NCBI RefSeq assembly: GCF_006345805.1
Contig: NC_043013.1
Location: forward strand, 45,756,001 to 45,820,000
DNA length: 64,000 nt
Reading direction: 5' to 3'
Origin: Octopus sinensis
Lineage: Eukaryota
Part shown: piece after piece, positions 11,124-35,300 of the stretch
Numbering within the stretch: position 1 is the stretch's first letter
How the letters are laid out: every line of letters starts with the position of its first letter
Made by a program: the position numbers and the translations under genes
The notes under the pieces: model-generated
The model's input: only the letters and a program-made list of their open reading frames with translations
The model's database searches: none
Told to the model about the DNA's origin: nothing

Positions 11124-11308
11124 TTAGCATTTAAGTGAATTGATCTTTGCCTTAGGCACTGTACCTGACACCTGAACTCCCAATTTATTTACGCAATAAC
11201 ATTTGTATTTACGACATTGAATTTTCTTATAATTGCCGTTTTTTTCACACCGAAATCTCTTTGAAAAATCTCCTCTTTTTTTTGTTTCTTTTTTGTCAAC
11301 AGCACAGT
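11124..11308 (-). CDS. Exon B4: TY domain [60 protein letters not shown]
   Basis: Acceptor tttcaag; open frame with 6 Cys, NGNY..IQC and CYCV motifs; TAA then G|gtaagt. Not in the ORF track. Confidence 0.9.
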
Positions 11309-14300
11309 CTTGAAAATAAATAAATAAATAAATAAATATTAGTTATTAGCAACGGAAGCAGTATTAATTCAAAATAACAATCTGTATTCCTTACTTAACG
11401 TGTGTAAACTGTAGAAAGCCATATAACTGAAGTATTCATCTCGAGACAGTATCACGTATAGGCATACAGTTCTAAAAAGCATAGTAGCGGAGGAAAAGTG
11501 CTTAGCAGTGCCAGTTTTTCACATAATTTCTAGGTAACTAAAAAAATTTAAACTACTGGTAGAATGTGTTTATAAAACATCCTTTTCTCTTGGCTTTATT
11601 GAGAAAATTCTATAGTTTGTAAGATATTTGTTGTCTTTTTTCTTCAATTTCTGCAATTTCAACCAATCACTGACGTCCATTGCGGTAAAAAGCATTCTGT
11701 GCCGTATGAATATGTCCCTCATTTAAGAAACAGATTGGGTTTATTTACATTTGTGAAGAAAAAAAAAGATACCCTTCCCCACCCCTAACCCTAACCCTAA
11801 AACAGATTGAAATGCAATAGATCGATACTAGGGTCATAATTATGGGTGACAATTTCATATGACACCGCTAGCAAAAACTGCCGGTCAAACCGAAAAGACC
11901 CTCGCTTAATCTAGATTTCTGTTTCTTTGAGCGTCTTCAGTAGAAAGTATAATTTTTTCCCAATAGAAACAATGATTGATACATTAACAAACATAATTGA
12001 GGCAGATATTTACTTAGCATGGATAAGCTGTTGAACGTGGATCTAAACAATAAACATACTGCATAGATTTATTGTAAGACTAGCAGCATAGCCCGGCGTT
12101 GCCCGGGTATGTAAGAGCCCCTAGTAGGCAACGACTAATCCCAATCTAGTCCTTTCCCTCTAGGGAACGAAGGCGCATGTGTAGGTTGCAATGTCTTCTC
12201 TTCACTCGAATACTTCTGTGTATACGATGTTCCTAGCTGTCCCTTTGGGCGATAAAATGGTCGAGTTGTGTCCCCTAGACAGAAAATGTGTTGCATATAA
12301 AAAGCTTAGATTCTCGACCCCATGTCGAATTTATCGATTTTTTTCAGAACTGGGGGAACTTTTCAAAATTTTCGCTGCGTTAGTTTTGAATTATGACGTT
12401 GGGCTATGTGTGTGTCAAGTTTCATCATAATCGGTTGAAAGCCGTGGTCAGGGTGAGGGTACAACCTGACAGACACACAGACACACAGACAGATAAACTG
12501 CCGTTTATATAGAGAGATAATAAATAAAAATTGCAGTGCAACTTCGTGATCATGGAATTCCTGTTAACTCGGGTTTTTAACTAAAACTTATTTTTAGCAA
12601 ACTTTTTGGTTGACTCGAGTCTACGACTGAAGACACTTTCCCAAAGTGTCATGCAGTGGAACCAAGGCTTTATAGCGAACTTCTTAACTATATAACCATG
12701 CCTGGTGATTAGTATCAAATAATTATGATTATGGCAAAGAATATACTTTGCCATGGTATATATTTATGATCTCATAAGTCCTCGTGGATCTGCAAAGACG
12801 ATAATCACAGTTTCTTTAACCTGACTAAGCCATATACAAATCACAGCACATCTACTTGGATTTGAATTAATCCTTTAACTATAATATCTGCAGTGATTTA
12901 GTCCAAGTTCAATACTGATGGGACGAATCTTTGTTGAAAAGCATTCCAGCTGTAACCACCCCGTCTTTTTACGGTATGGAAGATTACCAATGTCTCATTT
13001 TTTATTTAAGGCAGTAAGGAATAATTTAAGGGGTATTTGGTTGCTATTTTTAGCAGAGGCTTTCTAGTTAGCTCGGTCTGTGTATACGTGTGTTGTTGCT
13101 TAGCCCCAGGTCAACCCTGCTGGAACCGGCCTGAGATCAAAGGCATTCTAGCGGTAATCGTCTACCCTTTTACGAGTACATCAAGTACAGCATTATCCTA
13201 TGTTTCCTGTTTTTATGTGGTAAGGAGGACAATTTGGCTATTTGCATTTGGTCAAGTAACCAAAAAGAGGCTTCCTAATTTCTTGTATAATCATCATCAT
13301 CATTGTTCGACCGTGTTCGAGACAATGGAATTTACTATATTATGCCAGACTTCACGGTCCATCATAGCATTATGGAGATCCTGTTGCTGGATACCTGTAT
13401 CCCTGGAGATTACATCAGGGTAGGAGAGTGTGCGCCCTCTGGTATCGTGAGCAGATGGCTTCCAGAAGAGAAGAGTAGAAATTACCTCGTTTTCAGCTCT
13501 ACAACAATGTCCTCTCCAGCAAACTGGACTCTTCTACCTTTCACAAGAGATGACACAGTTGGTAGTTTCCCATATATTTGCATTTTGGTTGGATGACGCT
13601 TCCACGAGAGATTTTGAGCTCTCATAAGGAGGCGAGTGTAGGTTCCATCCAACCGCCTCTCAAGCTTCTTTGATAACGTCCAGGTTTTTGAGCCATATAG
13701 TAGAATTGGTTCGATTGTGTATAATGATAAAGTGATGTTCAGTGATTAAATAGACTAGCGTTTCAATATCAGAGAAGACTTCGTATTCAGGACGTAAAAT
13801 ATGAAGCTGGATGTAAATATGAAATTTCATTAAGGAAGGAAACACAGGCCTTTATTTCTATATTTCTTAGATAATTGCCTTAAAATCTACTTACTGCAAT
13901 TCATGCTTTCCACTTGTGTCTTCTTGACATAGATGTTGTAGATCATTTCCCCAGAGGATGTATAACAGAAGCAGCTGGTAGAGAAGGTAAAAATGTTATA
14001 TTACTCACCTCTTAAAATGTGCAAGCAGCTTTAGAACGAGGATATATTAAATGAAGAAAAAAGTTTTCTTTTTTGGATACAAACCTTTCCAAGATGTGAG
14101 TGTTTCATTTATAAATAAGACCTTAATTTCGTGAGTTGACAACATTTATTGAAAAGCGTAAATCGAATTAGTAGTTATTGTTTTGTCCCAGGTCAGCCTT
14201 GATCAGGCAGATCTCTCTGATCCGCCGAGGTCGACTTTGCCTTTCATCCTTTCGGGGTCGATTAAATAAGAACCAGTTAGACGCTGGGGTTGATGTAATC

Positions 14301-32300: not shown

Positions 32301-35300
32301 ACTAGTATACAGATAATTGATGGGGAATAGTGTAGAAATTTTGTTCATGTAGGAAGTACACCTGGCATGAAAAACAAATATGGAAATTACTAAAGACCGA
32401 GAAAATTATGTTTAGCTACTCATATATGGAATATAGTTCTTACTTTAAGCCAGTCTCATATGTTTAGCATTATCCGACATATTAAAAATTTTTATTCTGA
32501 CTGAAACAAATATATATCTCCTGATGACCGTTTTAATATTCAGTGAGGGTGTCTTCTGAAGAAGTTTTTATTTACAGATTTCGCCAAACAGTCATTTAAC
32601 TGTAATAAAAACAATACATTTTGGATTCTAGTGAAAGTTTTGTATCTGCGAAGAATAAATAAGCTTTGAATAATAGATTTTATGTTGCCTAACATAACTG
32701 ATCAAAGGAAAATAATCATTAATGGTGCTAACTCAAGAAAATGTCCTTTGATAATATTCAATACTTGTCCAAGCAGGAAATATTTCGTTACAACAGAATT
32801 TCCTTTGTGTTTTAACCAACATACTTAAATCACAATATAAAACTTTGGTTGCGGCCTAAAATCAACCAATAAAATGACTGAAATTTCGTTTCCTCTTCAT
32901 TATTGTGATTGATTTTATACTTAAGATGTCTTTACATGTTGAAGTGTCTGGACATTGGATAGCTTGGTTGGTAATTGCCTGCTTTCAACATCACTGACAA
33001 TATCAGAAATCTGTGGACGAAAGGTGTAACTGAGAAAGTTTATCTATGGAGAGGCAGCAGTAACACCTGAATTAGAAAAATCATTTGGTGTAAGATTACC
33101 AATTAAAATTGCGGAGGAGGAAATAGATGATGTTATCTGCATAATTCACTACGTCATTTATCTCAGAATTTCTATTCGAGCAGAAAAAATTCCTGATCCT
33201 GATCTGGAGAGTAGACATGCTGACTTCTCAAGTATGGTGGTTGCATGATGTTATCGTTTTGAAATACCAACAACTAATCATTGTAAAGTTAATGACTTTC
33301 TCTGTGACTTTTTTTGAAGTTTCAACATTTATGATATTTATAAAAATAATAACATAAATGGCCAACAAACTTGATGTTGTTTTAAGACGTTTTTTGTAAG
33401 TTTCTGGTAATACTCAGGAGAAAACTTCAAAGCATTTTTGAAGTCTTGAAATTCCTCCCATTGCCTCGTATTGTCGCAATATTTATTATATTCTCTTGTT
33501 ATATACGGACCAACAAATCCTCCATGTTAACGATTTTTTCATTGGATTCGTACCAGAAAATTCGACCTTCTGACGCAAACTTCGAATATCTCGTGGCCAC
33601 TTTTATATCCTAGATTGCGGATATACGATTTTAAGGAACCGGGGGATGGGGGGGGGGGTTAAATAATGTATTCACAGACTAGCTTCCGACTACCGACACA
33701 CGAGACTCTAGCGACTTCTTTACCTCAACGAGACACGTTACGCTTTATAAGAGTCCGATGAGTCCATCATGTAATCACACAGGGGCGTTAATATCTATCA
33801 TCACAACTACAATAGCAACAACAGCACTGTCATTCTTTTATGTTTAATCTGTTTCAGTCATTAGTCTGCGACCATTCTGGAGCACTGCCTTGAAAAAGTT
33901 TTAGTCGAATGAATCGATCTTAGTACTAATTTTTTCAAAAGCCTGGTGCTTATTCTATCGGTCTCTTTTGCTGAACCGCTATATTACGGTGACGTAAATA
34001 CACCAACACCGGTTATCAAGCGATGGTGGGGGATAAACACAGACACAAAGATACACAAAGACACACACACACACAACATGCGCGCGCACACATACATACG
34101 CGATGGGCTTCTTTTAGTTTCCATCTACCAAATCCACTCATAAGGCTTTGGTCACCCCGAAGCTATAACAGAAAACGCTTGCTGAAGGTGCCACGTAGCA
34201 GGACTGAACCCAGAACAATGTGGGTGGGAAGCAAGCATCTTACCACACAGCCGTGCCTGCGCCTATAAATTTAAAAAATAATAAATTTCCTAATTTACCT
34301 CCATTTTATGATCATTATGAGTCAAATAGGAAGCATTTAAGTAGCTGTTAAACCTGCTAGATGTAGCAATCAAATATTTATCAAATCGAATATACATCAA
34401 ATCACTATCTTAGAAAAAGAGGCATTGGATAATTTGCTACCTGGTTCTCTACATACAAAGCTAACCTAGGGATAAACATCACCACCATCAACAACAATAA
34501 CCACCACCACCACTACCTCCTCTGTTCTGAAGGAGCACTGAATTCAAGCCGATTATTCATACTATTTAAGCAGTGATCACCTCCTGATCCAGATGTAAGT
34601 GGAGGGAGTTTCCTAAGCAAATGACAATATTATAACATCCGTATATTTAGAGATGAGCCATCAGGCATCATTACAGTCGTTAAGCAGAAGGATCTTAGGA
34701 AATCGATAATGCGTAATATGTGTGTAAATATATATATATATATTATATATATATATATATATATATATATATAAACATACATATGTGTGTGGGGGTGTGC
34801 GTGCGTACGTGTATATATATATATTATATTATACATGCTTACATACATATGTACATACACATACATACATAAATAGATACATATGTATATATATATTATA
34901 TATAATATATATATATATATATATATATATAATATATATATATATATATATATATATATATATATATATATATATATATATATATATATATATATATATA
35001 TATATATATATGTGTGTATATATATATATATATAATATATATATATATATATATTATATATATATATATATATATATATATTTACAAGAAGACTAGTGAC
35101 AGTGACTTTGAAGTTTCGGCCTGATCGCCTACATCGGACTGGTAAATCTGAATCCATCTTGATCTTATATAGCATCTCGTATTTTTTTCCCTAAGATATA
35201 TGGAGCTATTTTATATGATAATTAGGTTGTAGTGTAAGTTCTGACTGAAAGATATTATTGAGTGTTTTTATTGATTAAATTTGGAGTTGTTTTATTATTC

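Follow-up and report, generated by a model that had tools for sequence, protein, structure and literature searches.

A tandem cluster of thyropin-like genes

The window analysed here is a stretch of 64,000 nucleotides from Octopus sinensis (NCBI RefSeq assembly GCF_006345805.1, contig NC_043013.1, positions 45,756,001 to 45,820,000 of the forward strand), and all coordinates below are positions within it. It consists of repeat-rich eukaryotic DNA with about 38% G+C, numerous copies of short interspersed elements (SINEs) and microsatellites. Six-frame motif scans and translated self-comparison located three paralogous 3-exon units, here called A, B and C, on the minus strand. Head to tail and entirely on that strand, the cluster is made up of genes that encode small secreted thyroglobulin-type-1 ("thyropin"-like) proteins. 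Each unit encodes two thyroglobulin type-1 (Tg1) domains, TY1 and TY2, joined by a Cys-Asn-Cys junction, and the exons are distributed as follows.

16994..17087, minus strand: unit A exon 2, 94 nt, first half of TY1; phase 1 in, phase 2 out; acceptor TTTCAG, donor GTAAGC; motif C..DGSY...QC; Pfam PF00086
13895..13974, minus strand: unit A exon 3, 80 nt, second half of TY1, from the CFC motif to Cys6
11123..11308, minus strand: unit A exon 4, the entire TY2, with the stop codon TAA at 11126-11124 immediately after the final Cys
30487..30580, minus strand: unit B exon 2
27798..27877, minus strand: unit B exon 3
25582..25799, minus strand: unit B exon 4; TY2 spans 25799-25614, and the unspliced frame adds 11 residues and a stop ending at 25582
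60211..60307, minus strand: unit C exon 2, 97 nt, with one additional codon
56291..56370, minus strand: unit C exon 3
55431..55624, minus strand: unit C exon 4; TY2 spans 55624-55439, and the frame ends in ...LPCYGK and a stop

All nine exons had consensus acceptors and GTAAG donors, and the exon phases (1 / 2 / 1 / 1) were kept in A, B and C. The units are 360 nt long in A and B and 363 nt long in C, where the coding span runs from 60307 to 55439, and all 12 cysteines, the splice sites and the reading frames were intact in each of them. About 190 nt downstream of exon 4, an ATTAAA within 'CATTAAAACTG' was kept in A, B and C (approximately 10930-10945, 25035-25050 and 55195-55215) and is a candidate poly(A) signal. 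In A and C it was followed by an old shared tRNA-type SINE with a GGTTCGA box.

10715..11122, minus strand: 3′ flank of unit A, sharing homology with those of B and C; it has the ATTAAA about 190 nt downstream and the old tRNA-type SINE; one of the baseline regions used below

An earlier note on this DNA had placed its comparison of A and B at 11124-33070. The homology between A and B in that range is real, but with the genes on the minus strand the range runs from the stop codon of A to the upstream end of the A/B homology.

Protein family and predicted fold

Pfam PF00086 matched twice in every unit with E-values of 1e-13 to 1e-16, and the units scored 49-59 bits against a cut-off of 20.6. 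The type-1A six-Cys pattern with its QC...C(W/Y/F)C(V) core was present, with 12 invariant Cys per unit and conserved CFC/CYCV, and sequence matches in the PDB were to thyroglobulin, saxiphilin and the p41 fragment. No close relative appeared among the protein-database matches; the best of them, at 43% identity, was P0004, an 'equistatin-like' protein of 159 aa from the nemertean Lineus longissimus, followed by proteins of Limulus, Cherax and Penaeus at 33-36%. The MNCNCA junction recurs in P0004, together with a signal peptide and two Tg1 domains, and the P0004 gene has identical four exons and phases and a stop immediately after the last Cys, as in A. Because of this match in gene architecture, each unit in the window can be read as one ancestral 4-exon gene.

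The predicted model of P0004, which is a homolog and not a protein of the window, had a mean pLDDT of 73 and contained one helix and one hairpin per domain. In Foldseek it matched the saxiphilin Tg1 pair, thyroglobulin and chain I of 1ICF (p41 fragment), and by way of this model the units are predicted to have the Tg1 fold. Short two-domain thyropins are mostly invertebrate, and one of them, IrThy from the saliva of Ixodes ricinus, has a signal peptide and two Tg1 domains with a Cys-Lys-Cys junction, both of which inhibit cathepsins (PMC10889554). In Tg1 domains the loops L1-L3 form a wedge that occupies the protease's active-site cleft; L1 is the first subdomain, held by the first disulfide, and L2 is the clamp before CWCV (PMC10889554, PMC7863939). 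Judged by its sequence, the family is predicted to be one of thyropin-type protease inhibitors and not a recognised toxin family. Aspartic proteases and metalloproteases are also inhibited by certain Tg1 domains.

A single gene with six TY domains, running from C through B to A, was considered as the units are phase-symmetric and a stop directly closes only A. This candidate was downgraded on four grounds. B and C have exon-1 copies, the 3′ flanks share the ATTAAA, the Lineus ortholog is a stand-alone 4-exon gene with an A-like end, and only 1-3 residues precede Cys1, compared with linkers of 13-16 residues in multi-module arthropod proteins.

First exons and the status of units A and B

Three copies of exon 1 were found in the window, one of which belongs to a fourth gene, D.

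62742..62793, minus strand: exon 1 of gene C, encoding a 17-residue signal peptide; donor GTAAGT, phase 1; 2.4 kb upstream of C
38738..38795, minus strand: exon-1 copy upstream of B; GTG in place of the ATG initiator, 6-nt in-frame insertion, donor intact
431..482, minus strand: exon 1 of gene D, whose body lies outside the window to the left; 98.8% identity with the exon-1 region of C

In the copy upstream of B, the next in-frame ATG would give a leader of just 12 residues. Promoter, 5′ untranslated region, exon 1 and the start of intron 1 were 95-99% identical between C and D (125-853 against 62425-63164) and 83-100% identical between C and B, and a further similar 5′ pair was found at 1917-2301 and 39703-40076. 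The 5′ module from the promoter to the start of intron 1 is far more similar than the gene bodies, which suggests that it was homogenised separately or that regulation and secretion signals are strongly constrained. The conserved signal peptides of which the earlier note spoke are real, with exon 1 and promoter at 83-100% among B, C and D.

No signal-peptide exon was found between B and A (17.1-25.6 kb), even with relaxed criteria, and the A/B homology ends upstream at A 23089 and B 33067. Thus A is no complete gene but a partial duplicate, which extends from the middle of intron 1 to the 3′ flank. The layout of a short two-domain thyropin (signal peptide, two Tg1 domains and CNC junction, up to about 180 aa) was found in gene C, with exon 1 plus 120 aa, and neither A, with no exon 1, nor B, with its GTG, had a functional first exon of its own. 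The assumption that two complete genes were being compared has therefore been dropped. The junction from exon 4 of B to exon 2 of A is in phase. A may use the first exon of B or form a B-A fusion; it may also have lost its 5′ end recently, or conversion may keep it intact.

Near-identical intron stretches are gene-conversion tracts

Near-identical stretches were assessed by self-BLAST within the window and by a three-way alignment across exon 2. The near-identity between introns of A and B that had first drawn attention to the locus was recovered: 17295-17440 and 30893-31040 agreed at 143/143 sites (100%), 17985-18290 and 31062-31370 at 283/302 (93.7%), and 22520-23075 and 32525-33070 at 500/527 (94.9%). 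Fully delimited, the tracts are the following.

17142..17448, minus strand: intron block of high A/B identity, with B 30752-31051 as partner; A and B agree at 130/130 sites over A 17443-17314, and A is C-like from about 17215
17961..18293, minus strand: A/B high-identity intron block, partner B 31039-31376, 92-94% identical
22516..23089, minus strand: A/B high-identity block, partner B 32517-33067, 95% identical at aligned sites; upstream it reaches to where the A/B homology ends
16959..17290, minus strand: conversion tract between A and C, with C 60174-60507 as partner; 96-97% identity in the intron and 92% in the 3′ half of exon 2, broken by the hypervariable patch described below

Along the intron leading into exon 2, A changed its nearest relative. 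The 130 nt from 17443 to 17314 were those without any difference from B; from 17313 to 17216, A was 94% identical to B and 87.5% to C; from 17215 to 17145, the values were 75% to B and 97% to C; and in the final 57 nt of the intron (17144-17088) they were 86% and 96%. The 3′ half of exon 2 of A was 71% identical to B and 92% identical to C (45/49 sites in A-C). Against a background difference of about 25%, a run of 130 nt with no difference is far outside chance. The block identities were uneven (100, 94, 95 and 79%), and all high-identity blocks lay upstream of exon 2; introns 2 and 3 and the 3′ flank were just about 72-80% identical. Around exon 1, C and D were 96-99% identical. Three observations bear the signature of recombination or gene conversion, namely the switch to another nearest relative over about 100 nt, blocks of differing age and the C-D identity, and the near-identical stretches are recent, patchy gene-conversion/recombination tracts. 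Separately, B has an insertion of about 110 nt at 30643-30751, 60 nt upstream of the exon-2 acceptor, in an otherwise conserved proximal intron.

Except for the A/B pair, the near-identical blocks were single-copy in the window and they were collinear; they are broken up by SINEs specific to A, a (CCAG)n array of 1.4 kb and roughly 1-1.5 kb of DNA that could not be aligned. Collinear, single-copy blocks with copy-specific insertions are paralogous intron and not independent transposon copies. Interspersed repeats were therefore rejected within the window as the source of the blocks, which are also contiguous with exon 2.

The blocks could in principle be functional non-coding elements, such as an intronic RNA gene, an enhancer or an alternative promoter, held near-identical by purifying selection. 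Their edges are sharp, and an alternative promoter would suit a unit A that has no exon 1. However, there was no Rfam family in the window, the 100%-identical block folded no better than its shuffles (z=+0.43), the blocks contained no conserved open reading frame or signal-peptide exon, and C has no counterpart to most of them. The switch of A from B to C as its nearest relative is also a signature of recombination and not of constraint, and we regard functional elements as a very improbable explanation.

Recent patchy conversion explains why some intron stretches are 94-100% identical. Gene conversion had been offered in the earlier note as an alternative explanation, confined to introns; the stretches are indeed conversion tracts, but the confinement does not hold, as the A-C tract takes in the coding 3′ half of exon 2. 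Given this origin, the near-identical blocks are unfit as a neutral yardstick. The actual baseline is 75-80% identity, so a contrast of 90-100% in introns with about 35% in exons overstates the effect. More generally, 'conserved introns' in tandem families can be recent conversion tracts and should not serve uncritically as a neutral yardstick.

Amino acid replacements exceed the neutral baseline

The neutral baseline came from three regions, one in intron 2 (its 3′ kilobase, A 14971-13984), one in intron 3 (its first 60 nt) and one in the 3′ flank (about 400 nt, with the old SINE).

13984..14971, minus strand: unconverted 3′ part of intron 2 in A, alignable in all three units; neutral baseline, p=0.20-0.25

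Distances in these regions were nearly equal in the three pairs, none of which stood out as nearest, and long identical runs were absent. The p-distance was 0.20-0.28 (0.21-0.25 in conservative ungapped blocks), corresponding to a divergence K of 0.25-0.30. Global alignments of whole introns gave 55-73% identity and were uninformative, as the alignment was forced; they were replaced by flank alignments with shuffled nulls and by ungapped blocks. At 4-fold sites in codons for conserved amino acids the units differed by 16-22%. The agreement of 4-fold and intron divergence indicates that the exons and the unconverted introns are of the same apparent age.

Between A and B, amino acid identity was 11/30 in exon 2, 9/26 in exon 3 and 32/60 in exon 4, exactly the counts reported before. 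Codon positions 1 and 2 differed by 34-43% and 26-36%, respectively, and positions 1+2 compared with the intron gave p=7e-5 for A-B, 2e-5 for B-C and 0.086 for A-C, in which exon 2 is partly converted. Nonsynonymous divergence (dN) was 0.40-0.50. Its ratio to intron K, with bootstrap intervals, was 1.66 [1.20-2.27] for A-B, 1.40 [0.99-1.82] for A-C and 1.74 [1.28-2.31] for B-C, so that the intervals exclude or barely touch 1. When the codons were partitioned, this ratio was 2.2-3.1 in the loops and 0.44-0.79 in the scaffold. The replacement excess is robust against both the intron and the 4-fold yardsticks. Hence exons do change faster than introns, in that dN lies above unconverted intron divergence, but the identity baseline is 75-80% and not 90-100%, and the third unit, C, and the three exon-1 copies were needed to read the pattern.

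One way to accumulate replacements would be relaxed constraint or pseudogenisation, with A and B as dying copies that gather them freely. The missing signal-peptide exon between B and A fits this, as do the change of ATG to GTG and the 6-nt insertion in B. In contrast, relaxed constraint cannot lift dN above the neutral rate, and the B-C and A-C comparisons share the A-B pattern. There were no stops or frameshifts, the 12 Cys and the splice sites were kept in every unit, and scaffold dN stayed at 0.44-0.79 of intron K; by our own rough estimate, the chance of all 12 Cys surviving neutrally at about 0.14 substitutions per site per lineage is about 1%. Decay of A and B is thus an improbable explanation of the excess.

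Hypervariable loops and a patch in exon 2

The replacement excess was concentrated in discrete segments. A nucleotide difference of 35-75% was found in the TY1 Cys1-Cys2 loop, in both 4-residue Cys3-Cys4 clamps, in both Cys5-Cys6 segments and in the second half of the TY2 Cys1-Cys2 segment, and in tests of the excess per loop p lay between 1e-9 and 1e-2. The Cys2-Cys3 segments, the CxC cores and the domain 2 helix did not exceed the intron rate, and the scaffold of Cys, Gly, 'DGxYxxxQC' and 'CYCV' evolved below the neutral rate. The expectation of hypervariable inter-Cys loops on an invariant 12-Cys scaffold was thereby borne out. Mapped by the Cys framework and the secondary structure of the P0004 model, the hypervariable segments would sit at the L1, L2 and L3 positions of the thyropin reactive centre.

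The sharpest case was a patch at the start of exon 2.

17043..17087, minus strand: hypervariable 45-nt patch in exon 2 of A, Cys1-Cys2 loop, predicted L1
First 45-48 nt of exon 2 of B (from 30580 downward) and of C (from 60307 downward), minus strand: homologous patches

Identity in the patch was 15/45 (33%) for A-B, 25/45 (56%) with a 3-nt indel for A-C, and 19/45 (42%) for B-C. The adjoining 57 nt of intron were 80-96% identical, and within the A-C tract the difference between patch and intron gave a Fisher p of 7e-8. In the A-C comparison, 3/7 codons for conserved residues in the patch differed synonymously, with flanks diverged by 4-9% (P of about 0.02). The patch thus gives the impression of greater age than its converted flanks, or else it was hit by a process blind to coding.

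A process of the latter kind would be mutation-driven segment replacement or hypermutation, resembling that of conopeptides or the exon-segment switching (ASSET) of snake toxins, with selection merely filtering its products. The patch is near-random (33-56%) at all codon positions and has a 3-nt indel inside sequence that is 80-96% identical, and exon synonymous divergence (dS) is inflated. There is also precedent in snake three-finger toxins, where exon segments were switched to unrelated sequence beside conserved introns (PMC2474615, PMC2711939). On the other hand, no donor sequence or mutational signature was identified, and the other loops resemble ordinary accumulated substitutions with no indels. 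Three sequences cannot separate such a process from long-term selection on an old patch; we consider it distinctly unlikely.

Proposed joint action of diversifying selection and conversion

The replacement excess was observed as a rate, 1.4-1.7 times the neutral one overall and 2-3 times in the loops, and its cause we infer. On balance, we lean towards the view that diversifying selection on the reactive-centre loops and patchy interlocus conversion act together in a tandem thyropin-like family. Conversion makes the copies uniform in their promoters, signal-peptide exons and introns, and even in exon parts that encode scaffold. Short, recurrent and patchy conversion or unequal recombination has recently homogenised the A-B blocks of intron 1, the A-C intron next to exon 2 together with half of that exon, and the promoter and exon 1 of B, C and D. 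At the same time, diversifying selection on specificity for target proteases may drive and preserve the differences between loops. Either the divergence of the loops would block conversion or selection would remove converted variants, with the result that tracts stop at the loop patches or skip them.

Concerted evolution alone would also leave divergent exons beside similar introns, if non-coding sequence was homogenised at various times and the exons simply kept an old, neutral or constrained divergence with no adaptive acceleration. Conversion is demonstrable at the locus, dS (0.5-0.8) is about twice intron K with dN/dS at or below 1, and the A-C patch looks older than its flanks (3/7 codons synonymously different, P of about 0.02). 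Yet the 4-fold p of 0.16-0.22 matches the intron p of 0.21-0.25, which points to the same apparent age, and introns 2 and 3, like the 3′ flank, are nearly equidistant in all pairs, with no nearest pair or long identical runs. The loop patches would still need conversion to be kept out, for which selection for diversity is the obvious candidate. We therefore consider concerted evolution on its own unlikely.

Several points weigh against the combination of selection and conversion. The ratio dN/dS was 0.52-0.82 by the NG86 method and 0.65-0.83 by maximum likelihood (LWL85 was also used), with loops at 0.7-1.1 and never clearly above 1, so the omega > 1 that formally marks positive selection was not observed. 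That dN/dS falls below 1 reflects an exon dS (0.5-0.8) that exceeds intron K. The comparison involves three sequences of about 118 codons each, with loops near saturation, and the set of loops was partly delimited after the data had been seen. The intron baseline consists of alignable sequence only (about 750-1000 sites per pair) and may underestimate neutral divergence or carry older conversion. Finally, with the GTG initiator in B and no exon 1 in A, part of the cluster may be decaying. What was found was nevertheless not a dN/dS well below 1 with exon dS equal to the true intron divergence: dN/dS was 0.5-0.8, and dN exceeded the true intron divergence. Of the positively selected toxin or defence family suggested by the earlier note, the replacement rate above neutral proxies stands; a dN/dS above 1 was not observed, and the family is predicted to be of thyropin-type inhibitors and not of toxins.

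A further arrangement is conceivable but doubtful, in which the promoter and signal-peptide exon of B serve either of two 3-exon cassettes, B or A, or else a B-A fusion of four domains, perhaps coupled to ASSET-like randomisation of the L1 patch between flanks kept by conversion. A single B promoter for two cassettes is suggested by unit A, which has no first exon and yet an intact and constrained frame. If true, one transcription unit would yield inhibitors with differing reactive loops.

If selection and conversion do act together at this locus, loops that change faster than neutral sequence would point to an arms race or to diversification of specificity against endogenous, dietary, parasite or host cathepsins. 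The cluster would also be a natural panel of loop variants for mapping the specificity determinants of Tg1 domains.

Other features of the window

Upstream of A, and absent from B, a 1.4-kb (CCAG)n-based array with a higher-order periodicity of 8/12 nt occupies 19346-20757 and explains the G+C and skew anomaly at 18-22 kb. One SINE family of about 400 bp, with seven copies in the window at 89-94% pairwise identity, is present in intron 3 of all units (11512-11901, 26124-26540 and 55741-56155); the orientation is the same in A and B and inverted in C, and independent insertions or an ancestral insertion followed by inversion are both possible. A SINE-like element of about 184 bp has more than 15 dispersed copies and also forms head-to-tail arrays of 2-4 units, 90-93% identical, an arrangement that is unusual for a SINE; its sites include 52694-53132, 58296-59032, 60706-61073 and 18315-18667. 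At 8087-9353 lies a local tandem duplication of about 606 bp, the two copies of which are 98.5% identical. A reverse-transcriptase fragment of a long interspersed element with a FADD motif was found at 42838-43389 on the plus strand, with related pieces at 13290-13719 (minus strand) and 56531-56780; its closest relatives, at no more than 78% amino acid identity, are in ENA metagenome contigs and the fragmentary NCBI assembly GCA_024449705.1. No tRNA genes were found in the window.

Comparison with known systems

Conserved signal peptides and introns beside hypervariable exons are classical in venom toxins and in the reactive centres of inhibitors, and mosaic conversion is ordinary in tandem families. 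Snake phospholipase A2 (PLA2) and conotoxins are also venom families with accelerated evolution and conserved introns, and the protease-inhibitor multigene families of rodent serpin clusters and ovomucoids have hypervariable reactive centres. Among venom families, the snake three-finger toxins described under ASSET (PMC2474615, PMC2711939) likewise have conserved signal peptides and introns, coding sequence that has diverged further than the introns, short stretches of exon that are barely recognisable any more, and exon synonymous divergence above intron divergence. The window differs from the venom families in that it holds another protein family, probably with an inhibitor function, in that dN/dS is not above 1, and in that part of the intron conservation is recent conversion. 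Kunitz inhibitors (PMC5107962) are a further parallel, as tandem duplicates in which the protease-contacting loops change fastest and framework and non-coding DNA remain similar; the fold differs, being Tg1 in the window.

The p41 fragment, equistatin and the Tg1 domains of saxiphilin have the same fold with an L1-L3 wedge, and the variable segments of the window lie at the same inter-Cys positions (PMC7863939, PMC10889554). They differ from the window units in having about 20-30% identity and in being single domains in larger proteins or a three-domain inhibitor. In the literature we found no cluster-level evolutionary study of these thyropins, and a literature search with Tg1 found no published case of hypervariable reactive centres in thyropins, which are the least studied family of cysteine-protease inhibitors, notably in invertebrates.

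With the short two-domain thyropins (MEROPS I31; IrThy and P0004), the window units share a signal peptide and two consecutive Tg1 domains, 12 Cys, a Cys-X-Cys junction and a length below 180 aa, and P0004 in particular matches them exactly in its 4-exon structure and has 43% identity to them. No other thyropin gene lies within 10 kb of P0004 in either direction, whereas the window holds a tandem multi-copy cluster with conversion and hypervariable loops, and its TY1 Cys1-Cys2 segment has 13 residues compared with 29 in P0004. New in this comparison are the occurrence of the pattern in short two-domain thyropins and a hypervariable L1 patch that can be delimited at base resolution inside a conversion tract.

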